Shown here in pieces: positions 14,860-35,977 of a DNA stretch of 64,000 bases. Position numbers and translations under genes: made by a program. The number at the start of each line of letters is the position of its first letter. Position 1 is the stretch's first letter. Origin of the DNA: Aplysia californica (Eukaryota). The notes under the pieces were generated by a model. The model worked only from the letters and a program-made list of their open reading frames with translations. It was not told the DNA's origin and did no database searches. Location of the stretch: NCBI RefSeq assembly GCF_000002075.1, contig NW_004797466.1, positions 560,381 to 624,380 on the forward strand. Direction: 5' to 3'.

Positions 14860-14931
<72 letters not shown>
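14860..14931. repeat. (GT)n(AT)n microsatellite
   Basis: Directly visible. Confidence 0.95.
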
Positions 14932-14934
<3 letters not shown>

Positions 14935-14944
14935 CACATGTATA

Positions 14945-15485
14945 TTTTTTCGGGGGGACGGGACGGTAAGAGTTTTACGGCATTCGCAGCTGCATTTAAG
15001 CCATTTGAACGCGCGGGACACACTTCGCATTTTCAGTTTGGTAGGAATTCATTTTGAATTTTGCCCGAATGGCGGCCAAAGGTTGCTTTTAGCGGTTTCA
15101 GTACCACAGGGGATTTTTAACTTGCGCAACTTGCACACGGGACCTCCGAGATTTTTATGTCCTTATCCAAAAGGCTATGTGTTGGATCTTACCTAGCCTA
15201 AGATCAAGAGTGTGGCTGAAAGACAGCAGTAAGAAGAAGCCAAGGAGTCGCAGTAGAAAGGCAGAAGAAACAGATGGGAACCTAGAGGAGGGGGCAAAGA
15301 GGTTGGGTTGGGGGGGGGGGGGGCGGCAGTAAGTGGAAAACGTAGACTACATGACATGATGGGAGAACAGAAAAGGTGAAAGAAGCATTTTTTAGAGAAT
15401 AAAATTTGCCGTCGCTGTCACGTTTCGAACACGGGACCTACTGAATGAAAGGCGAACACGCCGTGTCTCTGGACCAAACAGTCTA
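14945..15485 (-). mobile_element. tRNA-derived SINE with a Deu/Nin-like central block
   Basis: Head TGGTCCAGAG...GTTCGAAAC. Downstream TTTTGGATAAGGACATAAAAATCTCGGAGGTCCCGTGTGC...GTTAAAAATCCC resembles the conserved Deu/Nin domain (recalled from memory). Confidence 0.6.
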
Positions 15486-18400: not shown

Positions 18401-19217
18401 AAAGACTTTGCATTGATTAAGAAATAGATATAAAATGGAGTCAAGCTGCATTATCTTATCCAAATCCATAAATAAATGGAAAGACGCATTGTTAATGATT
18501 AACTTTTGAGGCATTTCACTTACACATCTGCACAACAAGTGCACTAGCATTATTTACAGCTGACGGGTATTATTTTTTTATCAAAACTTTAATCTCAACA
18601 ATACTCAGGTTAGGCAGAAAGTGCACTTTTTGACTGCATATGACAACTATGCAGCGTATCAAATTGAAACTGGCAATTATTGCGCAGGCTATGCACATGC
18701 ACAACTTAAACAACAGACAACACACACTCACAATTTCAATTAATTTTTTCTTTTGATTCACAAATTCAACACAGTAACGTTTTTAATAGGTAGGCCATGC
18801 ACTCTCTGTGACCACAGTATAAATTCAAATCATGCAAAAATGAAAGGGATCACCTAATTATGAATTTTGTTACATTACTGTCATTAAATATGGTAATCAT
18901 CATCAATGGAAACAGGAACAAAGAAAAAATCGAGAAAGTCAATAGTTCCCATCATTCATAGAAAAAAAATAGATCATAGTTTGTCTTCACCATGGAGAAA
19001 GAAGATGAGAGAGGAGATTGTTATTTAATATCTCAACGCAATGATGGATTACAGTTGATTATTCAATTATCCAAGAAGAAAGAAGGAGATTCCAGGCACA
19101 AAATGTCTTCACAAAGCATATATGTATATCACTCTATCAGTGCCCATGACAACACCATGAGGTGTCTTTCCGTTTCTGGTATCACATTAATAGTTTCTTG
19201 TTGAAAAGGGTCTCTGT

Positions 19218-22200
19218 TCAGGAAGATTCTTGTTCCAGCAAGGCGAAAGCTTCTTCTATCATTGCAGTAGCCTGTAGAGAAAACAAAACACTCTTGAGAT
19301 GCATTCTTGTTACCTCAAATTTACACAAACACACCATGTAAAGAGAGCATTTCGGAGCAAGCCAAGTTTCAAACCTCGGTAGCTCACAAGAGACTGCAAT
19401 GACACATTTCGTTGGCCAGCTATTACATTATACCATCCCTCTCCAATAGCCATTATAGTTATTTAGGCACACACTATTTATTCCATCATTGCTGAGCATC
19501 CCAAGAAAATGAGCTGGAAATAATACATATTTATTTATGTACTGCATTTTCACTGTGCAAGTACTGAAAAATCAACACACATATATTATTATACAGGGTA
19601 ATTAAAAAAGAATACGCCAAAATCATCACACAATATTTTAACAACGAAAAACAATAGAAAACTCTTGCTTGGACGCATATTTTGTAACAGATCTTCAAGT
19701 ATTCCTTTTTATGTTTTACAAGTGCTCAATGTGGCCACCACCGGCAGCACGACAGCATCAAGCCAATATAAGAATTCCTTCCAAACACGCCTCAGAATGA
19801 CTCAGGCCACCGTGTTGATTGTAGCTGTTATTCGATCTTTCATGCCATCGATATTTGCTGAAAGTGGTGGAACATAAACTTCATCTTTAGCATACCCCCG
19901 GCAAAAAAATCACACAGAGAGGTCAAGGGATCTGGCAGGCCAACTACAGAGAGTGAGGTCTTTAGCACCTCTCCTACCAATCCACATTTCAATTCAGATA
20001 AGCTCAAACTCAGATGCCAATGGGGAAGTGCTCCATCTTGTAGAAAAATGAAGTCATTTGAATATGCGTACAGTAAAGTGAATAGCCACTTCTTGTGGTG
20101 GTATGTTAAAGACAAAGTTAATGTTTCACCACTTCCAACAAATATCAATGACATAAAAGATTGAATAACAGCTACAATAAACTCGGTGGCCTGAGACATT
20201 CTGAGGCGTGTTTGGGAGGAATTCTGATATCGGCTTGATGATGCTTGTGCTGCCGGTTTTGGTCACATTGAGAACTTGTAAAACTTGAAATAGAAACTTG
20301 AAGGTATATACAACACATGTGTACAAGCTGGAGTTATCTATTGTTTTTTGCTTTTGTAATATCGCTCGATTATTTTGGTGTATTCTTTTGAATCACCTTG
20401 TATTATCCATTTCCTCTTTCTCACTCTCTCCAGGAATCAACCCGGTCACATTTCTTTCCCTAATAAAAAAAAAAGCAAATGATATGCCTGCCCTGTACAG
20501 GGAGAGTTGAAAATAGCAACAAGCCTGATCAAACCAGCAGTCACTTACCCATACAAAGAAAGTTGCAGCACCAGCTGAAATGTCCCTTACATCATCCAGT
20601 TCATACTTTTCCAGAAGTTTCCGAGCCTTCTTGGCAGTTTTTAGTGCCAAAGTTTTCGCATCCAACTCCAGACAGCGTCGTTTAAGGCTCTCCTTCCCTG
20701 TTTTACCCACAAGAGCCTGCACCGCCTTCCAGTCCTACACACAGAGTTTCAGAGTCAGTCATGGGCAAGCCATCCATTTCCGTGATACACATATAGAGGT
20801 GTTAGCTCAATTTTTTGTCAAGGACACACACAAGTTTCCCCTCTCCCCTTCTTTTCAATGATGACAACCGCCTGAATAATTTCCAATATTTTTACCAGTG
20901 TGATCGGGGAACACAGCACATGAAAACATTATTTTATATTAAAATCCTTTCATTGAAATTCAGTTTCAGCAAAGTCCATAGGAAGCAGTGAGTTCTTTTT
21001 TCCCACGTGTGTTATTATCATTATGCCTCTACATCATCAAGACAAAAGTAAAGTACCAGTAACAAAAGAGTCCATCAAAAATTGAAACAAAGTCCCTTTT
21101 TCCTATTTCATGAGTCAGAAACAACATCCCCCCTCCCCTACCCCCAGCAAACTTTTTCTTTTCTTCTGAAAAATTTTTAAAAAGTTGAGGAAGGCAATGT
21201 ACACATGGATTAACCGACTCCAATTCTATAAATACAAATTATTCAGCCAGAATTAAAAAAAACTACCAGCTACTTTACCGCTATTTTAAAAAAAAAGCAG
21301 AAGTCCTTAACTTGCACTACATAGACATGGGTACAACATTTCTCAAAATGAAGACAGGACTAAACATCTTTCATTTTGCATATATTTTCCTTTGCGAACA
21401 CATCTTGCTCCAGCATCATCTCAGAGGAACAATTATTGAAAACAACAGAATCCATCAATCTATAAGCATAAGCTGTCTTTCCATTACTGGTACAACCAGC
21501 AATTGAATATTTCTTTGAGTCAGCTGACTTCTTATTTTGTTTGCTATATAAAGCGACTTGCATGGTATTATACCTTTGTACATGCCATTAAAAAAACCCA
21601 ACAGTCACAGAAAGATAAAAACGGATATCTTCTCTTTCTTTCTTCTAAATTCAACAGGTGGTTATAACAAACAGATATGTCCTCTAAAGCGATACGATCA
21701 ATGATAAGAAACAAAAGTAAATTCGGTGTACTTCTCATCCAATGCAAACTAGGAAATTGAACGAAACAAGGGAAAATGTACTTTCAAAGTTATGGCTCTC
21801 ATTCAGTGCAAAATAATAAATTGAACAAAGCGTGGGAAAATGTATTTTCAAAGCTATGGTTCTTAAAGACATCGTTCAAAATTCACATTTAACTTTTGTT
21901 TCCACATTACCTTTGTTTCTCCTTCCTTATGCCCCAGCAGCAAAAATGTGGCAGTCATGACTGTGTGCACAATGAGCGGAGGGCTCGTGTAGCTCCGGAT
22001 TTCAGCCACAGTCGACTGCTTCAGCTCCAAGATCTCGTGTCTGATCCTCTCGAGCCGTCTGAGATGTGACAGAAGTTTGTTCGCATCCATCATCTCACTA
22101 GCGAGCTCCACCTCTAAGCCGTGTTTGCGTACAAAAGTCATAGCTCTGTCCAGTTCCTCAATTTCCCTCTTTGTCATGGCTTTCTGGAGACCTACATGGA

Positions 22201-25200
22201 AAATACAAGACAAAAGTTGCCTATTGTAGACTAACACCTTTCCAGTGTGAATTAAATTTACTAACATATTATATCTCTGGGCAGAGATTAGTTCACAAAT
22301 GGAACAAACATACACTGGAAAAAGACAAAAATGTCTTTAAAAAAGGATAATAATTATAATAGGTCTCATCACAAGCCACGATGATGCAGTTTCTGATTAC
22401 AGGAGATGCTTTTTGTGAGAATTAGGAAAGTGTCGGCAAACATAGCTTTCAGCTAGAAGCCAAAATATAAGATGAGGTCTTCCCGAGTTGAGCGTGAATT
22501 TTTATACCAGGGGGTTCCCCAAAATTTTATGTCTGTTTTCTTATAGTCATTAATTGACAAAAGGTCTGTAATATTTTATTTTGATTTATTTTTTAAAAAC
22601 TTCATATTCTAAAATAATTATTTTTTCGCCTTTGAAAGTTCTGCCATTTCATGGTTTTTACACTTAATCTCACTTCGTTTTCCTATCTTTAAACTTTACA
22701 AAGTGATTATTTAATCTAATTGTAATCATTTTTGGGCTGTTTTATATGTACAACTTTAAAACTCAGTTTGCTGGAAGCCAAAGTAGGCATCAAGATTTTT
22801 TTAAAATATACATGTTGAAACTCTGAAACATCAACTCTAGAACAGATATCTTTGAAATTGAAAATGCAGAACATTGAGGACAGTCCCTGCAATGTGATGG
22901 TCGCAAAAAGTCAAAATGTCCTGACACCACCACATTCCACATTCTTGCAGATATCTTCTCAAACGTTTATGTAATTCCTTTTATTTTCTCATTTCTTCCA
23001 TCGTTATGACTTCTTAAAGGATCGTTTTGGTAACATATTTGTATGCTATCAGCATATTTCCCTCCTGTGCTTTTTCTCTCATATCAAACCCTTTCTATTT
23101 ACTTTTTTCATTACACTGAATGGGTAAGAAACATAATTTTTAAAAACAACAACAACATAAAGCCCATATACCTTCTTTAGCTGACAACTGCCTCAAAAGG
23201 CGTTTTGCCTTCTCATAGTCCATGTCATCATCTGAGAGTTTAGCGTTCTTAAACTCTGTCATTGAGAACTCAAGCTGGTACTTGTCCTTTGCCTTGATGG
23301 CAACCTTCAATTGGTAGCGGATGCGCTTGTTTTTGTTATCTGTTGAATATAAAAGCAACCAAAAAATAAAAAGTACATGTAATTTTATTCACACACACTT
23401 TACTTTAAAGAAAGTGAATTGTCAAGTCTGGTCTAAAAATCGTCTTCAAATTTTTTTGACAAAAAGTTCTTTATCAAAAATGTCTTCCACTGTGTAGATA
23501 AGTATGAAGGAATGTATCTGCCATTCTGAAATTAAAGCTTCTGGCAACCATACTACATTTTTAAAACAAAAAGAAAATTTTGTAATACATTTTAGAAAAT
23601 TGTAAGGTTTTGTTTAGCTATTTGGCTCACCTAAGTAACAGGTGAACTCTTTCTGTACTGGGAAAATTCAATGTTTGTATCATGCAAAATACCCTGATAT
23701 TGCTTTAGCAGAAGCTACTAATACAGTTTTGCAAATACAAGTCCTACCTACTCTGACAACAACACTGACAAGGACCACCACCACAACTGTTATTACCATT
23801 GTCACTACCACTGCCGCCATCTCAACCAATGCCATTACCACTACTGCATCTAATACTAATCTTGCTGCAACTTGCACTTCCACTGCCAATTCAGCTGCCA
23901 TTCCCATTGTCATTCCCACTGTCACTATCACCACCACTTCAGCTGCCATTCTCATTGTCATTCCCATTGTCACTAGAGTTGTTCCCACATCCGATCCAGA
24001 CATTGGGGATTGCCTTGTTAGCGGGACAACTTCCTGGGCCTTCGGCATATTTTGGTAGGGTGGCCAGTTCCTTTCCACGCCGCCTCTACTTCCCCAACTC
24101 GAAATCAGGTACCCATTACTGCTGGGTGGGCAGGAGCGGACGAAAAAAATCTGTGTCCGAACCGAGGCTCGAACCCAGACTTTCCGCTTCGGAGACGAGT
24201 GCATTAACCGCTCCGCCACTGCACTCTCTTACCACTGTCACTTCCACTGTCAAAACTACTACTACTGCCACTACTCCACCTCCCATTGTCACTGCCACTA
24301 TCACTTCAGCAGTCCCTCGTGCAGCCACTATGACTACTATGACCACTACTATAACAATTAGTATTACACCCTCTCTCAGCACTTTATTACGTGTGACTTC
24401 TAGAGGGACTTTATTCTTTACCTTTCTTTAGCTTCCTCTGCCTTTCTTCTTCCTCTTCTATCATCTTTCTCTTCTTTTCATCTGCTCCATCCTTTTCACT
24501 CTCAAGTTTAGCCAGTTCATTGTCAGCATCTTTCTCAGCCTTTTCTGCTGCCTGGAGGAAGAGAAAAAATGTACACTCCAAACTCATCCAGTCTGTATGT
24601 TTTAGAATGCCACTGAGCCCACTGATGTACAGTGGAGTCCATCTATATTGGACTCACGGGGGCAATTTTATGTTTTTGGGCTACTAAAAGTATTTCCATG
24701 TAAAAAGTGAAGGAAATAGCAAAAATTACAGCATAACATTTTCAATTTCAAGGATGATTAGGGTTAGCATCACGGGGACACAATTTGCGATGCCTATCCC
24801 CACCCTGCTTTGTCTGCTATGTCATGACAAATCTGATTTTGACACGAGTTATCTGGCGTTCATGTCACAAGCACATATGTCAATGTCATTGCCAGCTCCC
24901 TCTCCCTCCTCTCCACTCCCCCCGTCCCCAATTCCTATCATTCTTGGATGACGCGATGTAGAATGAAAACACAATCAAGTGTTGGAGTCAACATGAAATT
25001 AATCAAAGAAGTACAATCCATGACTGAACATTTTTTATGGAATGTAAAACCTGTCATGGATGCAGCCTTGTCCTTGTAGAAATGCCAGCATAGATTCACA
25101 AGAACAATTTTGTGGTTAATTTATTTACATTTCTCTCGGAATTATGCTCTGCCTAGCCACAAATGGCTTCATAATAAGATTAACCCATGTCACAGTGCGT

Positions 25201-28200
25201 TCATATGGTCACAAAAATAAGGAAAGAGTAACAAACCATGTCTCGGAAGAATTAATTTTCACCCATATTTATTACAATAATAATAATAATAATAATAATG
25301 ATAAATAGCATTTGTATAGCCCATAACCCCGCTCTACAGCAAGCTCTATGTGCTTTTATTTACATACCATTACCCCAGCAGACCATAGAACACTCAGAAA
25401 CATTCTCAGCTTCCCGGGAAGCATACAGTGCAAGCAGCTGCTTAAGCGTTCACACACTATTATATAGTGATAATGTGAAACTGAGACAGGAAATATTACA
25501 TCCCAGTGACAGAATAAAAGAACCTTTCTCGATGCACACTTACAAAAGAGCTTTTCTACCTTGTACTTATAATATGCACACGTATAATCTATACAAGCAA
25601 ACGAAAAATAATGATGATACGTCAGAAGAAGGAAAATCTACATCCCTTTACAATTATACTGTTTTCAGTTTATACAACATTGGTATAAAAATAATTCGTT
25701 AAAAGCTCCATCACATCCATGGACATACAGACATTTTTGTGAATTGTATGTGCATTATTGTGTATTTGGCTCACCTCAGTAATAGGTAGACCCCTTCTGA
25801 AGAGGGATACAGTCTTTTGTATTCATGAATGTTCTAGATTGGAATCCTAGAGGGATCTTAGTTTATTTTAGTGCTTTCTATGGGAATGTTTCCTCTAAGC
25901 CTGCTACCCTGTTGGGGCTCAAAAAGTTCTATTCTATGTCAGCCAAGGTACTTAACTTCGCTATTTTCAGTAAACAAAACATGCCATGTACAGAAAGTAA
26001 GAGACAAGGGTAAGTTTTGCTCCTTGGCAGGTTGAACACCTCTTTCAAGGCAGAAAAGTGATATAGAAAGCAGGACTTCCAGGATAAATGCCCATCTCCA
26101 ATAAAACTGATCGAACAGATTGAGAGCCATAATAACTCTGGAAACAACCTAACTTCAGGAATGTCCTGTTCTGGATTTGAACTTGGGCCATCCATTTTGC
26201 AGTTGACTGTGATGATACCAAGAGAGATAATGGCACACCTGTTTCGCTTATTGATAGACTTTTTGAAAATGTACATTTTTTGTGCCTTTAATCAATCTTT
26301 TTCAGTAAAATCCTCACAGAAATGTGTTTTTATAAGGATATAAAAAGGTGTTAAGCCAAAAAAAGACAATTAGAAAAAAATTGCCCAACGGGCAGAAAAA
26401 CTTCAATTTCTTTGATTTCATTATTTTGACGAGCGCCTGATTTCACCACGATGCCTTACATTTATCTTCCTGCATTTTACATGAGCATAATGCATCAAGG
26501 TGTACGTGTGAAGGTGATATTAAACAATATGGACAAGCTGGAATGCAAAACACATAAAAAACTGTAGTAATATTCTGGGTCAAGGGTTCACAAGTTTGTA
26601 ACTGTGTCTCTGGCCTTGATGGGAAAAGTAAACATCAGAGGTCAGAGGGTATATAATCTCATGACAGCTGCTGCATGGGTGGGATGAGGTACTCTTAAAC
26701 CTTTATGTTTTGTATGCTATGTATTTAACACAAAAATGGGTTAAACATAGCAATTCTTAAAAAATCCAACCAGACGTCCTTTAAAAACATTGATTTAGGT
26801 TTTTATTTGACATTTTAAAAATAATTTATTTATGGATGTATCAAAAGATGTTCTGACCATAAGATATGCTTGGAAAAATTACCAAGTGGCCATTTTCTTT
26901 TGATATGAAAACTGTAACAATGAATTACGATGAACCATTTCTTTCTAAGCACCTCAAAGATCGCACCAGAACAAACTTGTACCGTTAGGGAACTGATAAA
27001 CACCATAACTATCACATTGTCAAATATTTTGTTGCTGTTTCAAGAGAAATGAGGAACTCCATGTGATCCTGTTTTTAGGGAAAGAGAGTAAAACCATTGG
27101 TGATACCACTTTTCTAGTAGCAACAATGATTTGGATGTTGAGCTCCCTTGTAGCGTAAGAAAAGATTAATCATTCGCTATCATCATCATCAATGCCTTTC
27201 ACCCCAGGCAGGGTATAGGCCGCATACAAGCTCCTTCCATTTATCTCTATCCTGGATCATTCTTCCTAGCTTGTTCTAAGTGAGCTTCATCTCTCTCATG
27301 TCTCTTTCCACACATCTCCTCCATGTCTCTCGAGGCCTACCCCTGCCTCGTGCTCCCTGTGGGTTCCATTGCAGTGACTGTCTTGTGGTGTTTCCGCTGG
27401 GCTTTCTGAAGGTGTGTCCCATCCAACGCCACTTTCTTAGTCTTATTTCTACTTCTATATCCTTTTGTCCTGCCCTTTCCCATAGCTGTTCATTTCTTAT
27501 TCTATCTTAATATTCGCTATACCTACCACATTTCATAGTGAGATCTGTACAGCTACGATCACAGTCGAACCCTCTCTAACACCGACCTATATAATACAAA
27601 CATCTGCCACTTATCGTATTTTCCTCCATTTCGTATTTTTTACATTGTAATGACACTATGTAAGACGTTCACTTTTCTCTTCGACAAGGGAAGGCCATCT
27701 TACAGTTCAGTTTCGACTTTACTTCCCCAGGTGTATTGGGTAGAATTTCTCAGTTTCAATTCTTGTGTGGTTCTTTTTTCCCCTGGTAATGGCTGCTAAT
27801 GCAAATACTTTTTAAATGTATGAATTAACAAAATTTTAAAGCCAGAATCTCTATATTCTGCCACAATATTATGAATACTGCTAGGGCTTACCTCTTTGTG
27901 GAGCTCTGCATCTTTGTATAAATTTTCATCTGCCTCTCTCTTTCTCCTTTCTTCCTCTTCCAGTCTCTTCAAACGTTCCCTCTCCTTGATAAACAAATGG
28001 AGTATAAAATCAATGGAAAAAGCTACTCACAGTTATACAAAGAATACCATGGAACTTAATTTTTTTCACAGCTTCTGAAAAAGTCGTTTTCGTGAAAAAA
28101 TCAAGCCAAGATCAAACCTTAAATCTGCAAATCACTAATATCCACCCTTGATAATTATTTTGAAAATACAACAAAAACAAATACAACTACTTAAAATCTA

Positions 28201-31200
28201 ACTTGGAAGAGTGCTCCATTCCTAAGTCAGTCATAATATTCTTATTCATATATTTCATATATATATTCCCATAAGCAGTCAACATGAAAGCATACAAGAC
28301 TTTGCCACCACTTTTTGGATTAACTAATGCCTTCCATTCTACCCTTCCTTGAAACTACAATGTAGTTAAGTGTTCCTTTGATGTCATGCATATTTGCATT
28401 GTCAATGTCTCAAAAAAACCCTGTTGGTACCCATTTTCATCAGAGCAGAAGCAGAAAAGAGTGTGTGTGTGTGTATCTTACTAAAAATACAACATTCAAA
28501 CATTCAAACTACGACAAGGTTAAGAACTGAACCTGTAACTCTACAAGCTTTAATAGATGGTTCCATAAATATGAAGACAGTACAAACATAATATTGTACA
28601 ATACCCACATCTCAAAAAAATTACGTTTTGATAAATCTCAAAAACATTTTTTTACCTCTTCATCCTCCTTCAACTTCCTCTCAGCATTCTCCTTTTCTCT
28701 AATTGCTGTTGATAAAAGATAAAAATTACTGGTGAGTTACGATCACCTGACTAAACAGGAAAGGTTTGGTACTATTCGAGTATAAACCAAAAAGAAATTA
28801 AAATTACATATCATTCTATTGTAACCCCCCCCCCCATTCCCCCAAATCCCACCACAGACAAGAAAACACTGTATTGAGAAGAGTAAAATATAAATGAGTA
28901 ATCAGTCTACTAGGCATCCTAGAGAAAAGAGGGATTGGTGAGTTCTTTCAAACGAAACAGGAAACAGATGGGTAATGTCAGGAGACAAAAAAAACATAGC
29001 TGATTGTCAAGGCATTTTGTTCTTCTCTATGTAGATCAAACACAGCTGGTCTGACATTTTTCCCTCCCCCCCCCTCTCATTTTTTCCCCTTTTGGTTGCG
29101 TTTTCTTTCTCACTGGTACTCCACAAATGCTTTCATTCAAGAATTGTTCTCCCTGTTTGAAACACTAAATGGCAAAAAAAAATGTCCTCAATGTTCTCTG
29201 CAGCAAAGGGCAAGCAAGCACAATGCGGAAGTTCATTATCACAGCTGAACTCTAGCATGGAATGATGTTTACAACTACATGTCACTCAGCTGACAGGCTA
29301 CATAACAACAGTTGCCCATGTCACAACAGGACCCAGACACAAATCAACATGCCCCCAGTTTGTGACCCCACCAATAAGGCTGTAGTCATCCCTTACCACA
29401 CGCACACAGCAATCACTAGAGAGAATAGAGAGTGCAAAGTCCAAGTACATAAATAATATAACTATAAAGCCTGCATACTTTTTTATTCCACAAAAGACAA
29501 CCTTCGCACAATATCAAAACTTCAGGTCATTCGGTATCTGTCAGGGTAATTTTTTATGTGCATTGGTGGAAAATTTAATATGAGCACGTTTTTTTTTCAT
29601 GATAAGAGAAAAAACATTTTTGTTCCTTTTTTTTAAAATATGGGGTTTTATGGCGCTCGCAACTGCATAAGGTCATATGAGCACGCCGTGTTCCTCTATG
29701 TTTCAAAACAAACCAAACAAAATTTAAAAATTTGACCGCTTTTCTAAAAATTGGGGTACAAAGAGTAGATATATTTTTCATCTGAAGTAGGATTACTATT
29801 GGCACAGAGCATAAGAATGAGCATGGCATAGGTGCAACCAGGAGCGCATAGATAAACATTTATTACAGAATTCAATTATGTCTGGGAAAATGACCCTGTC
29901 AAATTATAACAATAGCCTCAATTCTATTACTCCTAATGAAAATCAAACAAATTTTATAATATTATCCAAACAACTGATTTATCTAAAATATATGACCTAA
30001 CCTGTATTTTATTCTCGATAAAATTAGCACATAGTTATAAAAGAATCAATGCCAATTAGTTACTTTCTTTCGGCATTTTTAATGCAGTGAACATGCAGGA
30101 ACAACAAATACTCATAAACAGAAGGGCAAATGAAATGCATGGGCAAAACACTCAATTCATGGAATAGTACGACAATGCTTCCTACGTCATACATTGATGT
30201 TGTGGACGAAACCTTTTCACCCTGGCCCAGGCACATTTTAGCAAACATTTAACTCCACACATAGATAGAACATCATAACATGACAACCTCGCCCCAAAAC
30301 AGCAAACAAACAAAAAAGAGAAAACAATGACCAGATCATTAAGCTTAACTTCCGGCTCTACGCCACAAATTCGCAAACATCTGTCACAGTGAGCTACACT
30401 GACCGCAATACGGAAATAATAATGACATTATTTTCTCTCGACCAAGTTCTGTGCATCACTTCAGCTTTTGAAAATATCCCACCCCCCAAATTATCCAAAT
30501 TGTGTCGATATACGCTTGCCTTGAAACATTTACAACCACTAGCAATTATTTATTACCCAACAGAATTCCACTAATGTTCTGGGTTTTCGAGTAAACAAGC
30601 AGGATTATTTCTCCCCTGACAATAAAGTTGAATGAGAACGATTTTGTCCTTTCTCTCAATTTGCATTATAAATTATAAAGCACTTTCATTCAAGTATTGT
30701 TGTTCATCACGACGAACTATTGAAGTTTAGATTATTTTATAACTAGGAGTTGTGTGGGTTGGGGGATCCAATGTGTGACAGGAACTAGGGTATCCTGATC
30801 CAGGTAACAAAAGGTCTTGCGATGCAAGTGTGTTTGATGGGAGGTGTGTCAGTGGGGGGGGGGGGTAGAAGAACTTAACTCTGAAGGAAGATTCACACTA
30901 CACTGAACTCATGACAGAATTTGGAATTTAGCGAGATTATGGATGAAAATCGAAACACCATCGGAAAAACAGAAAAACAACAAACCAGAAAACTGAGAGA
31001 AAGACAAACATAAATGGGTCAGCGGTCTCAGCCTGTATGGACCTGCTCAATATCCAAGAACACATAGGCTCATTACTCAGATGATTTTACAACTAACAAA
31101 GGCCCATGTGAGAGGACTTTATTTTATTCGCCAGTAGCAGGAAGTGAACTCATTAGAAGATTTATACATTTACTGAGCCTTTAAATGTATAATGCACTGA

Positions 31201-33233
31201 GCTTTTGTATTAGGCATTCCTTTTCCATAGCTATGGACTTTGTAACCATTAACAAAAAAAACCCCAGATACTATGACCTTAATTGCAGCCAGTTACATTT
31301 CAGAGAGACATTATGGCTCCAGTTAAGGACACAGCAACTTTCCATTAAATAATCTCATGAAATAGTTGTTTGTTTCACAACAAAGTTATCTAATACATCA
31401 CAGATATACACAAATTCTTTGCACACAGGAGTGAGTGTCGGGGTCAATGCGGAATGAGCATGAAGAAGCCATGGGAATCATCATAAGACCAGTATGTTTC
31501 CATCTCCTTCCAATTCAGTACTTATTCCCCAATTGCAAGCTTAAATAAGAGATACCCAGGGTCAAAACTAAAGGGATTTTAAACACAACACCATGTGACA
31601 TGCCATCAATGGAGGAAGTGAGGTCACTGTGAAGGTCTCAACAAATGCTCCACTCAAAAAAAAATGTTTACAGAACATTGGTTTACCAGTTTACCTTCAC
31701 CTCAAAAAAGAAAGAGTTTGTTTCCTATAGCAAAGAAAGGAGAGAAAATCAGACATGTTTTATTCTTCAGCACACACTATCAATATACAATATCAACTAA
31801 AATATTCATCATTGCAAGTGGAAAGAAACCTGACATGCCTTGAAGAAAGAGAGTTTTGTAAACGTTACCCCACTGCTAGCTGCCATAAAAAGATTGAACT
31901 CACGGGCTAGAGCTTAGATGTAAAGTCATAAGAACTCACAGATATTATGTATGGGCAGAGAACTGCAAGATGAAGGTATTTCATTATATTCAGAGGTTTA
32001 GAATTACATTTTGCAATGCTTCCTCTTTTTATCATGTATCTTACGATAAATCTACTCCTGCTGAACAATAAGATCACCCAGTTTTGGTTTCAAGGGAAAT
32101 GACACTGAACTGAAATATCTATACATATATATATATAATGTATGAAAAGTGTGTGTTTGTGTGCGTTTGGGTGTCGAAGACAGCCACACATCATCAAAGA
32201 GAAAGGACGCTTTCTTTGAAAGATGAAGATCATGAACAGTATCATTACAAAATAGAGAAAAACACAAGATGAGGGGTGAGTGTAAAGTGGTTGTTTGTGT
32301 AGGTAATTTTCTTAGACAGCAATTAGAACAAGTCCTTCTGTACATAAATATAAAGTAGCTTCAATAAAACTGTGGGAAGAATGATTCAACTTGTAAACGT
32401 AGATACAATTGAAAATGAAAGTTAGTCAAAAGTCAAATGCTTGTAAGAGTACTGTAATGACTAAGCACTCAACATAAATCAGAACATACCTTCTTCTCTT
32501 TCCCTTCGAAGTCTTTCCTCTTCTGCTTTCTTGTTTTCCTGAGAAAAAAATATTTCAAAGAATAGCAAGGTCAAGAAATATTCCAGCATTTGAGGAGAAA
32601 GAAAAAGCAAGGCTCAAACCTTGCACACAGAGGTCATGACTGATTCCTTCTCATGGATGATATTTTGAAAAGCATTTCCATATTTTTGTAGGGATGTGTC
32701 CTTTACAGCCTAGACTGACCATTTCGGATGTGGTTGAAACAGTCCACTTCCAAAATGTCCTAAATAGCTAAAATAGCAATTTTAAATATTATCTTTACTG
32801 CATAATGAGTATGAACATTTTTTTACTAAAGGCAAGCAAAAATTAAGATAAATGCAGTGTCGATTTTATGTAAAATAGAATAGATCTTAAACTTCTACGA
32901 TCGAAAGAACTAAACATTGAAAGGACAACGTCCGTACAAGAAGAGATAAACACATACCTTACCGATACCACTTATAAAGAAATAACACTTTCAGTTTTAT
33001 AACAACAACTATGCTAGTTACAAATACACAGTATCATACCAATCCAAATACACTAGCATGCACACCAAACACCCCAACACATGTATACACACACAAATAC
33101 TAACACAACTAAAACACACACAAAAGCAAATATGCACATATGTACACAAACACTTTCAAACATACACACCTCACACACACAACTTGCACACATACACCAC
33201 CCATGCACACACACATACACATCAGGTCACACA

Positions 33234-33301
<68 letters not shown>

Positions 33302-35977
33302 AGCTCATATCACAGATCAGATCATATAAAATCCCTTTAAAGTATGTGAACTTACAAGTTCTTCCAACTTTTTGGCAGCTTCTCGTTCTTGCTGTCTTCT
33401 CATCCTCTCTGCCTTAGCAGCAGCTGCCTCCTGTTCTTTGCGTTTTTGTCGCTCTAAACACAAAGAATACATTCACATATTGCACACATAACAAGAATAT
33501 ACCATAATGCTTATCTGTTCAATAAAAAGTTTAAAAACCCTTTTAAAAAAACCCAACAAAGTAAAATATGCAGAAAGATGAGTTGGTAAACAGAAATTTT
33601 TTCTTGAATATTCGTTCTTGAAAAGAAATAGAGTCACTTTAACACTTTGAATCATATTATCTCCACATGCACTAATAAAATAAAAAAATAGAGCAGGATC
33701 AATAAAGTGCTGCATAAATTAAGTCTTAAAAGATCCAAACGTTTTACCTTTCTGTAATCGTTCTCTTTCTCGTTCCTCTTCCTCCAAGATCTGTTTGCTT
33801 GGAATGTCACAAAGCATCACTTCTATCTCTGCAAACGTCACACCACTGCCTGGTACAGCTCGTGATTTTACAAAGTTGCTCCATTTCCCAGGCGAGAAGA
33901 ATCTTCCATGGACAGACTGGACAAACCATCTATGGACAAAATTTTGTTTTCTGGGATATTCTGATATATTTCCACATAGAAACAGAAGTGTTTTGATATA
34001 GAAAGTATACATTTCCACATTTGATGCGATAAAAGTAATCAAAAGTAGCAAATTCTTCAGTTCAATATGGGAATGATGGAAACTGATATTTTACTTCAGC
34101 TGAACAGAACATCTCAAGCCCAGTTTTATGTAAGGGGTTTAATCTAAAATACAGCTCACCTTCCCTATGAGACACACATCTATATAAACAAAAAATAAAA
34201 ACATCAGAAATGCTCAGAGCTTCAAAACTAAATTAGTGAAAATATATTTTAATAAAGTCAACAAGAGAATGCATATTCAATTTTGAAAAAATACAAATGT
34301 TACAGACAGCAATAGCTATTGAGAGCATGAGTACTTGAGATTATGCAAGATGGAATTAAGCTTTAAATAAACCAGTGTAAATGAGCGCGAGAATTTCTTT
34401 TGTCCATTAGAGAACTGTTGGAATTAAGTGATGATGTTCAACTTTCTACCATCTTTGATACATCTGGCTGATAACTGTATCACAAGATGGCAAAGTGCAG
34501 ACAGATTACAAGTATCACATTTCCGTGTATGAATATGGCTCTTTTAAGCTGTTCACATGATTCTATAGTAAAATGAACTTCATGGTTCACTATAATCATT
34601 TTTTAGGGGTTTTTTGTACCAAGTTAACACAAAATTTTCACCTGAAAACAGCTGAATTGTTTCATTTTGAAGTAAATGAAGTGCATAATTTTCTATTAGG
34701 TAAAAAACATAAAGCATAGCATTTGTATCAAACCACGTACTTTGCTTGAGCCACAGTGATGCTTTGTTTCTGTTCTCGGTCCAAAAAGGAGAATTCCCAT
34801 CGGAAATCTTGAATAAGAAAATAGCGACGATCCATCTCTTGAATAAGATCATACAACTCACTGATATGGCAGTTGTTTGTAGCACAGATGTACTTTACAG
34901 ATGCAAAAACCTGAAGAAAAAAAACAAAAAACAAACATCTCTTAGCATTTTCAAAACTTGAAAACACATGTTATCGATTCTGTTATGTTACTCAAGTTCA
35001 TAAAGCATGTTAGATTTATACAATTTTTCTCCCTTGACTGTACCCACCACACATCACACCCTTCATCTGCTCAGCTTGTGATTTAAAGACAGCGGACTCT
35101 TTTCTCCACATAGCAGGATCTCACATGATTTTTTTTCTTCAGAAAGACGTTAATAAACTATTTTTCTAATTTTACCCACAGGTAGATTTTGCTTTCCATT
35201 TTATGTGAAAGGGCATAGATGTAATTCACTTACAATAGACTATCATGTTACTCAGAATATGATCCCGTACCAACAATTTTGTTTCATGTTATAAATACAA
35301 TGAAGGACAGGCTCTTACGCGATTAAAGTAAGGGCCATGCTTCCAAAAACATTCAATCACAGGACACCAGTCATCTCAACTTTTAATGGTGAAAAAAAAA
35401 ATTGTAGATTCTACAGAGTGAGAGTGTGTAGCTTATATCTTAGAAAGTAGAAGTGAACAAGATAGAAGAGAGTATTTGTAGGCTAAGAATAGTTTCTTCT
35501 CTATTTTGTGCCTTTTTTGAAAAGCTACTGAAACAAGCTAGGCTGCCTTTAGCACCTATGCTTTTTCTTGTCAATGCTTCATTTTTTTTCTCTCTGGGTG
35601 TCTATGCATCTAGTTCATTGTCAGCACACTCAATTCTTCCATGGACATATTAGAATTTACTTGTAAATTTTCATATATACCCCAGTCTTCTCTTTGTTCA
35701 TCTTTCTTTCTGTCCATCTAAAAATCTCGAATCTCTTTCCCCAATTCCCAGTCCTAATAGCTCTTGTTCTTGCCATAGTTGTTTACTAATAATGGACATA
35801 TCTTACCTGTGGTAGACTTATTCCTCCCATTCTCAGATCTCCATGCAATATTTGGACTTGTATTGGTGTAAGTTCTTCAACTCCATTTGCATCGTACTGA
35901 GCAAAAACTTGTTCAAGAACTTTCTTTTTCTCAGCTCCATCAAAATTTTGGGATGTGTTCCTGAGAACCTCGGTCAT
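19218..35977 (-). CDS. Uncharacterised 543-aa protein: EF-hand-like N-terminus, E/K/R-rich helical linker, C-terminal dynein MTBD-like domain
   Basis: Twelve phase-consistent GT-AG exons: 35977-35807, 34910-34741, 33929-33748, 33453-33356, 32538-32490, 28705-28656, 27984-27892, 24551-24422, 23339-23172, 22191-21911, 20734-20549, 19271-19218 (1632 nt). Runs from MTEVLRN... to ...EQESS*. EF-like loops FAQYDANGVEEL and FSFLDREQKQSI. C-terminus EIRSYTSPP...LLLGHKEGETKDWK...SAGAATFFVW. Confidence 0.9.
19594..20400 (-). mobile_element. Decayed Tc1/mariner (maT/DD37D-like) derivative with ~280-bp inverted arms
   Basis: TA|CAGGGTAATTAAAAAAGAATAC ... GTATTCTTTTGAATCACCTTG|TA. Minus-strand transposase relics DFIFLQDGALPHWH, WPARS.DL..CDFF, YAKDEVYVPP and GGHIEHL*. 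Confidence 0.85.
23975..24228 (-). mobile_element. tRNA-derived SINE (Arg-like head) with a conserved central domain
   Basis: A-box TGGCGGAGCGG and B-box GGTTCGAGCC, then CCACCCAGCAGTAATGGGTACCTG and a GGGAACAACTCTA tail. The acceptor stem does not pair. Confidence 0.8.
27181..27511 (-). mobile_element. 5'-truncated RTE-clade LINE 3' end
   Basis: Minus strand encodes RKWRWIGHTLRKP...WNPQGARGRGRPRETWRR...QDRDKW, followed by a (GAT)n tail. TSD ATTCGCTAT at 27172-27180 and 27512-27520. Confidence 0.9.
33060..33299. repeat. Degenerate (CA)n followed by (CT)n microsatellite
   Basis: Directly visible. Confidence 0.9.

Follow-up and report, generated by a model that had tools for sequence, protein, structure and literature searches.

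A relative of the dynein microtubule-binding domain at the end of a motor-free protein of Aplysia californica

The microtubule-binding domain (MTBD) found at the tip of the dynein stalk is usually treated as a part belonging to dynein only, its affinity being set by the sliding of the stalk helices under the control of the ATPase ring. One question then is what such a head could be doing in a protein that has neither stalk nor ring. This question is raised by a minus-strand gene in a 64,000-nucleotide stretch of the Aplysia californica genome (positions 560,381 to 624,380 of contig NW_004797466.1, assembly GCF_000002075.1; hereafter the window, with positions counted from its first letter). 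The gene runs from 35977 to 19218, and its 543-residue product ends in a module which an initial annotation had picked out as a dynein MTBD-like fold detached from any motor. We ask here whether the module is indeed a relative of the dynein head, in which proteins it occurs, and what it would bind.

The C-terminal module and its relation to dynein

The module is encoded towards the end of a series of minus-strand exons, the last three of which, 22191-21911, 20734-20549 and 19271-19218, join with both junctions in phase 0, every exon boundary being flanked by AG on one side and GT on the other. Their in-frame pieces comprise 93 residues (22189-21911, the exon itself opening at 22191 with a split codon), 62 residues (20734-20549) and 17 residues followed by TGA (19271-19218). 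Transcript-type contigs of the public run X8, mapped on 19000-24800, skip exactly the two introns, from 19271 to 20549 and from 20734 to 21911, with intron ends reading CT..AC on the plus strand and hence GT..AG on the minus strand. The splicing proposed in the initial annotation is thus borne out, and the peptide given there is present on the minus strand; the start of its span (19218-22060) falls inside the exon beginning at 22191. Chained by script, beginning with the ATG at 35977 and closing with the stop at 19218, 12 GT-AG exons yield a product identical, residue for residue, to a public protein of 543 amino acids named 'trichohyalin [Aplysia californica]' (P0154), the length originally put forward being exact. 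This protein was retrieved by a search with exon 10 (exon A) followed by a search with the best full-length match, and by tblastn every part of it finds its place in the window, with identities of 75-100%. PolyA RNA-seq reads (X21 and X22) are thin over exon 8, with loose ends at 24553 that enter the end of exon 7; the expression of the gene is low in these samples, yet the splice model stands.

Simple searches give a faint picture of the relationship. When compared alone with the PDB, exon 10 finds 18 matches at E <= 10, of which 17 are dynein heavy chains or stalk and MTBD constructs, all of these sitting at the end of the stalk helix CC1 and at helices H1-H2, the best with an E of 0.01. Exon 11 (exon B) alone has no match in PDB or Pfam. 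Likewise, the Pfam family MT (PF12777), against which the initial annotation had suggested checking the sequence, is reached by neither exon nor by the whole Aplysia protein, and stays below the E 0.01 threshold in 61 of 63 orthologues, being reached in the other two. The orthologue P0039 clears the gathering score of this family (26 vs 24 bits), and P0073, a relative composed of a tandem array, attains 90 bits. The blanks reflect low sensitivity, not absence, and for the Aplysia sequence the relationship becomes visible only by profile and structure searches.

An exhaustive HMMER search with exon 10 returned 464 proteins at E <= 1e-3, and from these we picked nine short proteins bearing the whole module, the alignment of which constitutes profile A1. 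Compared with the PDB, this profile matches DNAH6 (E 2.8e-10), a dynein of Chlamydomonas (1.3e-9) and the yeast MTBD in isolation, 6kjo_A of 141 amino acids (1.5e-8); all matches at E <= 1e-4 are dyneins, and the non-dynein matches, which are weak and comprise some designed helical proteins and further helical ones, start at E 3e-4. The alignment with dynein spans the head from H1 to the tryptophan of H6 and brings the landmarks into the same order: E-I-R-S-x-x-x-P-P at H1/H2, a tryptophan that opens H4, and S-x-G/A...W in H6.

Structure prediction, a further check that the initial annotation had proposed, points in the same direction. The full-length AlphaFold model, built from an alignment of the 63 orthologues with the Aplysia protein first, has a mean pLDDT of 85.6, and in a VIA-align comparison structures of dynein MTBDs or stalks make up the whole of its top 12 matches (Z 12-16.4). 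Both 3err and 5ayh give a Z of 16.4, the latter with a root-mean-square deviation (rmsd) of 2.5 Å over 140 residues, the microtubule-bound 6rzb_C a Z of 13.9 (rmsd 2.5 Å over 138 of 149 residues) and 6kio_M a Z of 13.4 (rmsd 2.2 Å); the model-based matches also include 6l4p_B (Z 14.2) and 2rr7 (Z 11.5-12.1). The next class of matches consists of EF-hand proteins, with Z <= 9.6 and covering the opposite end of the model. For the domain alone we modelled the orthologue fragment P0043 (pLDDT 95.2, pTM 0.85) and compared it with 48,161 chains without Foldseek; here 5ayh and 3err reach a Z of 17.3, and unrelated helical proteins do not exceed 7.9. Foldseek places dyneins in all of its first 45 ranks, but with an E of only about 2e-3, and an independent ESM Atlas model matches dynein MT clusters at template-modelling (TM) scores of 0.68-0.71.

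Could a helical, coiled-coil-like sequence have produced all this by chance, or a wrong gene model have created the module as an artefact? The weak single-exon search, the blank returned by exon 11 and the modest Foldseek value speak for such an explanation. Against it stand the E value of the profile, an H1-H6 alignment that is complete and in which only dyneins rise above the noise, VIA Z scores of 14-17 over a background of at most 7.9, splice junctions present in transcript contigs, and an architecture kept in more than 60 species, so that we consider its probability negligible. The conclusion of a true evolutionary kinship between the dynein heavy-chain MTBD and residues 401-543 (about 143 residues, encoded by the end of exon 10 with exons 11 and 12) is supported, and we hold the homology and the fold to be nearly certain. 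Similarly supported, by the models, is the presence of a six-helix H1-H6 bundle between CC1-like and CC2-like helices. The other half of the original claim, that of a protein lacking the motor, holds as well, since Pfam finds no AAA+ or dynein motor family in the Aplysia protein or in its 63 orthologues.

The likeness to the dynein MTBD (the centre of Pfam MT; 3ERR, 5AYH, 6RZB and 6KJO) thus comprises the six-helix head together with the last part of CC1 and the beginning of CC2, at about 20% identity, profile E values of 1e-8 to 1e-10, Z of 14-17 and an rmsd of 2.5 Å. Unlike dynein, the Aplysia protein has no long antiparallel stalk, no AAA+ ring and no ATP-driven register switch; its CC1-like helix lacks a proline kink and supplies the second helix to a conserved hairpin, and the H2-H3 flap is absent.

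Architecture of the protein and mobility of the module

At the N-terminal end, residues 11-156 are modelled as a four-EF-hand-like domain, which matches the PEF domain of calpain-3 (Z 9.6), sorcin and calmodulin. Pfam EF-hand_6 is matched by 32 of the 63 orthologues, and in the Aplysia protein itself Pfam finds no EF-hand family. The Aplysia loops are degenerate, loop 1 having V at position 5 and Q at position 12, loop 3 having K at 5 and Q at 12, and loop 4 beginning with R. The canonical 12-residue ligand pattern (D1, D/N/S3, D/N/S/G5, E/D12) occurs in none of the 63 orthologues at the four positions checked, these being loops 1, 3 and 4 and a putative second-loop window at residues 63-74. 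A 'Ca2+-linked' reading of the EF-hands is therefore unsupported for Aplysia, and the absence of the usual ligands makes a calcium switch doubtful.

The domain is followed by residues 159-331, 65% of which are E, K, R or D; they are modelled as helices at 159-223, 235-291 and 296-331 and form a candidate single-alpha-helix spacer. Two conserved helical hairpins, alike in their sequence pattern, occupy residues 315-400, and the CC1-like helix (401-425) is the second helix of hairpin 2. Helices H1-H5 then extend over residues 429-516, and H6 with a short stub over 518-542, the protein ending at residue 543, which is 17 residues past the H6 tryptophan and about where CC2 of dynein would continue to its proline kink. 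The public name 'trichohyalin' derives only from the charged low-complexity helix. As an identity it was rejected: trichohyalin is a vertebrate hair-follicle S100-fused protein with long Q/E/R repeats, and the ordered domains of the present protein resemble EF-hands and an MTBD, every relative listed being invertebrate. The same correction applies across the family, where the names 'trichohyalin-like', 'caldesmon-like' and 'golgin-like' all stem from the charged helix.

Orthologues of the EF-hand form occur in ctenophores, a sponge, cnidarians, molluscs, annelids, nemerteans, a brachiopod, a bryozoan, echinoderms, hemichordates, amphioxus and tunicates, their architecture being conserved in more than 60 species. 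Among the matches listed, within the length windows applied, there are none from vertebrates, arthropods or nematodes, which is a lead and not proof of absence.

The initial annotation described the module as standing alone. This is correct in that it is motor-free, but the module recurs outside this protein, being a mobile domain found in several architectures. The same C-terminal module closes proteins with KY/transglutaminase and Ig-like_KY domains, including a 'hillarin-like' paralogue in Aplysia (P0276). In these KY or 'hillarin-like' proteins of molluscs, brachiopods and amphioxus (P0071, P0139, P0259 and the Aplysia P0276) the module is 35-45% identical and is preceded by the same hairpins, and the N-terminal part consists of Transglut_core and Ig-like_KY in place of EF-hands and charged helix; the two forms are paralogous uses of one mobile domain. 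The module also closes CD20/MS4A-like four-pass membrane proteins, as well as CLCA plus VWA and VWA-only proteins. Upstream of it there are three to four hydrophobic segments in the CD20-like proteins, and in the CLCA/VWA proteins one strong hydrophobic segment along with a signal-like one; since the module follows transmembrane segments, it is predicted to lie in cytoplasmic tails. An equation of the module with the 'W180 domain' of Hillarin was rejected, LIM-containing hillarin-like proteins lacking both module motifs.

Finally, tandem arrays of 5-9 copies exist. An intronless open reading frame (ORF) of 1,568 amino acids (P0241; L001:3001-7707, on a 1.36-Mb ENA metagenome contig) holds nine MTBD-like modules with a period of 173-174 residues, and the close spacing of the genes around it makes a microbial eukaryote the probable source; a shorter member of this cluster, the above-mentioned P0073, carries five copies and an N-terminal Hmw_CFAP97 match. 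We also note an ESM Atlas cluster of oomycete proteins (about 398 amino acids), 33% of whose members have Impact_N and 14% Pfam MT matches; the cluster model compares with residues 421-543 at a TM score of 0.62, and the cluster may represent a further motor-free MTBD architecture outside animals.

Within the Aplysia genome at least four further loci hold module exons (E 1e-10 to 1e-23), namely G000:C140:971327-972843, C68:1324396-1324632, C952:134358-135707 and C614:220046-221705. Those on C952, C614 and C68 break at the same profile position as the present gene (about 145, just before the invariant tryptophan), the one on C140 being ambiguous; this common intron position suggests that the module has spread by duplication or exon shuffling. 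Weaker Aplysia matches (E about 1e-5) may be dynein genes.

What the head would bind

We infer that the Aplysia protein is a portable, passive microtubule anchor, and on the basis of sequence, models and analogy put the probability of this at roughly 0.6. The head would bind the acidic outer surface of the microtubule as does the head of dynein, whose site is the tubulin intradimer interface, but it would be an anchor of a passive kind, for want of a sliding stalk and an ATPase ring by which its affinity could be switched. In place of a stalk, the stubs of CC1 and CC2 probably have the two hairpins (residues 315-400) packed against them, which would fix the head in one state. The E/K/R-rich helix of about 170 residues (159-331) would serve as a stiff spacer, made of a single helix and reaching up to about 25 nm, and the domain at residues 11-156, its EF loops being without the usual calcium ligands, would hold a partner protein instead of sensing calcium. 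The protein would in this way tether something at a set distance from the microtubule. The occurrence of the module on CD20-like, CLCA/VWA and KY/transglutaminase tails and in tandem arrays fits the idea of a general portable anchor to the cytoskeleton.

Indirect support for microtubule binding comes from charge, conservation and analogy. The H1-H5 head has a net charge of +5, against a family median of +4; the H6/CC2 stub is acidic, as is the EF-hand-like domain, and the charged helix and linker are neutral. The H1 lysine and the arginine of E-I-R-S are more than 90% conserved, and the Trp-Lys of H3/H4 is also conserved, the conserved positions including Lys428, Arg436 and Lys467. The analogy is with a long non-motor protein of Toxoplasma, chain L of 9YA2, whose globular domain at residues 1207-1457 has the same fold as the module model (Z 10.1, rmsd 3.0 Å over 124 residues). 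This chain is probably ICMAP2, to judge from the title of the entry and a chain length about 10% of 1,678 amino acids. The protein concerned, a component of the intraconoidal microtubules, sits on the outside of the microtubule with an 8-nm periodicity and binds as a dimer between protofilaments, a likeness to dynein being unmentioned by the authors (PMC12819142). Unlike the Aplysia family, it is apicomplexan and not animal, and it has no sequence similarity to that family detectable by profile search.

A second non-dynein look-alike suggests another explanation. In the bovine sperm axoneme, residues 1326-1491 of chain Xl of 9FQR, its C-terminal stretch of about 165 residues, match the module (Z 10.3, rmsd 2.8 Å over 140 residues), and this chain is possibly EFCAB5 of radial spoke 3, in which case it would likewise be an EF-hand protein ending in an MTBD-like fold. 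It differs from the Aplysia protein in its length of about 1,500 residues, its DPY30 motif and its being built into the stalk of the spoke, and it has no sequence match to the Aplysia family; since the profile search for relatives of the module returns only dyneins, the identity of neither 9fqr_Xl nor 9ya2_L is confirmed by sequence. For EFCAB5, located in the stalk of radial spoke 3 of sperm, published descriptions mention a 'C-terminal globular domain' and name RGS22, LRRD1 and STKLD1 as binding partners, the described partners being proteins other than tubulin; a likeness to the dynein MTBD is not pointed out there either. Chlamydomonas radial-spoke chains also match the module partly (7jrj_I, Z 8.0; 7jtk_C). 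The module could then be a true MTBD homologue that no longer grips the tubulin lattice and serves as a docking or scaffold domain in a complex, for example a radial-spoke-like one in axonemes, and the orthologues are indeed found in animals rich in motile cilia. However, the assignment of 9fqr_Xl to EFCAB5 is only a possible one, cytoplasmic tails of membrane proteins and arrays of 5-9 copies are places where one would sooner expect a polymer binder than a single docking site, the head retains its positive net charge, and the Toxoplasma example of the fold outside motors is bound directly on the microtubule. We thus regard a pure docking function as possible but rather unlikely.

A head whose target has become a different filament or surface (septins, actin or membrane, for instance), with the dynein-like fold as a mere scaffold, has also to be considered, inasmuch as one contact position in H6 is shifted and one of the host families, the KY/hillarin/Ltd-1 transglutaminase-like proteins, has been connected with septins and with an actin-like pattern (PMC3718969). 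Yet the true LIM-containing hillarins studied experimentally in those papers are without the module, so that the link to septins and actin does not transfer; the landmark residues of H1 and H3 are conserved, and we found no feature pointing to another ligand. Retargeting therefore appears improbable.

Several further observations weigh against microtubule anchoring as we propose it. At H6 the alignment places an aspartate at the arginine by which yeast and mouse dynein make contact, an arginine occurring one position earlier. The dynein head needs the right register of CC1 and CC2 for high affinity. Low- and high-affinity dynein structures match the Aplysia model equally well, for which reason the affinity state mimicked by the capped stub cannot be told from the model, and the probable packing of the hairpins on the stubs is itself deduced from the order of the helices and the alignment ranges. 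In 9fqr_Xl, and in the Chlamydomonas radial-spoke chains that have it in part, the MTBD-like fold may be a protein-protein module instead of a lattice binder, and the Aplysia sequence falls below the Pfam MT threshold.

A wider view, which we hold tentatively and at slightly less than even odds, is that the module exemplifies an ancient portable 'orphan MTBD', capped by hairpins and independent of register, which is used by non-vertebrate animals and apparently by some protists, and of which the Toxoplasma ICMAP2 and sperm radial-spoke look-alikes are also members. Its hosts would then be proteins with EF-hands and spacers, KY/transglutaminase, CD20-like and CLCA-type proteins and multi-head arrays.

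In full-text literature searches we came upon no description of an MTBD of the dynein type in any protein other than dynein. The gene itself is already public, but it is named only after its charged helix, and the motor-free, mobile form of the MTBD is new; a reusable microtubule anchor has probably been overlooked by annotation. If it is true that the module binds microtubules, a conserved MTBD without stalk or ring would constitute a new class of microtubule-associated protein domain, and would account for the way in which several membrane proteins and transglutaminase-like proteins of invertebrates come to the cytoskeleton. It would also offer a natural minimal head with which to ask which state of the head is the default. 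To a specialist in dynein or microtubule-associated proteins this would be surprising, and not paradigm-breaking until binding is shown.

Coding exons and other elements of the window

All 12 coding exons lie on the minus strand. Exon 1 (35807-35977; residues 1-57) holds the start codon and the first EF-hand-like helix-loop-helix, with model helices at 14-28 and 38-48, and is found by tblastn at 100%. The EF-hand-like domain continues in exon 2 (34741-34910; residues 58-114) and ends, at about residue 156, in exon 3 (33748-33929; residues 114-175), where the charged helix starts. This E/K/R-rich helix is carried on by exons 4 (33356-33453; residues 175-207), 5 (32490-32538; residues 208-224), 7 (27892-27984; residues 241-271) and 8 (24422-24551; residues 272-315), the last being the exon with X21 and X22 reads. 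The intervening exon 6 (28656-28705; residues 224-240) is also charged and contains the only low-confidence stretch of the model (residues 223-235). Exon 9 (23172-23339; residues 315-371) encodes the first conserved helical hairpin upstream of the module, with R322, L325, K326, A328, K345 and A359 as conserved alignment columns. Exon 10 (21911-22191; residues 371-464), whose downstream junction is seen in X8, encodes hairpin 2 including the CC1-like helix and then H1-H3 of the head, with model helices at 401-425, 429-437, 443-455 and 460-463. Exon 11 (20549-20734; residues 465-526), both junctions of which are seen in X8, begins just ahead of the invariant Trp466, is aligned to H3-H6 of dynein and encodes H4 and H5 and, as far as Trp526, the first half of H6. 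Exon 12 (19218-19271; residues 527-543 and TGA) adds the short CC2-like stub, the model helix extending over 518-542. Since X8 contig 9, which is joined to exon 11, spans 19000-19270 unbroken, the 3' untranslated region covers at least 19000-19217 on the minus strand, that is at least 218 nucleotides.

The introns contain several elements of another nature. Between the last two coding exons lies a foldback element of about 780 bp (19606-20389), whose arms, 19606-19899 and 20097-20389, form three collinear pairs that are 78-87% complementary; its decayed ORF (19843-20262, minus strand) resembles the C-terminal part of a mariner-type transposase and has no Pfam match. A very abundant repeat at 23850-24237, in the intron between exons 8 and 9, has a summed contig word depth of about 290,000 in X5 and 2,300 in X8 and long low-complexity ORFs on both strands; polyA RNA-seq reads in both orientations start at 24032 and carry many variant letters. 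It is probably a high-copy interspersed element which is transcribed elsewhere. In intron 7, a 76-residue open frame on the minus strand (27279-27506) contains a W-R-W-x-G-H motif, which we take to be typical of the C-terminal region of the reverse transcriptases of long interspersed nuclear elements, and is probably a decayed retroelement fragment, again with no Pfam match. Pfam was run on two intronic ORFs, both without a match, and an Rfam search across the window gave none either. Seven runs of N, amounting to 1,941 N in total, interrupt the window. Simple repeats comprise a (TA/TATA)-type run at 14860-14970 and, in intron 4, a (GA)n run beside a (GT/CA)-rich stretch at 33230-33300.

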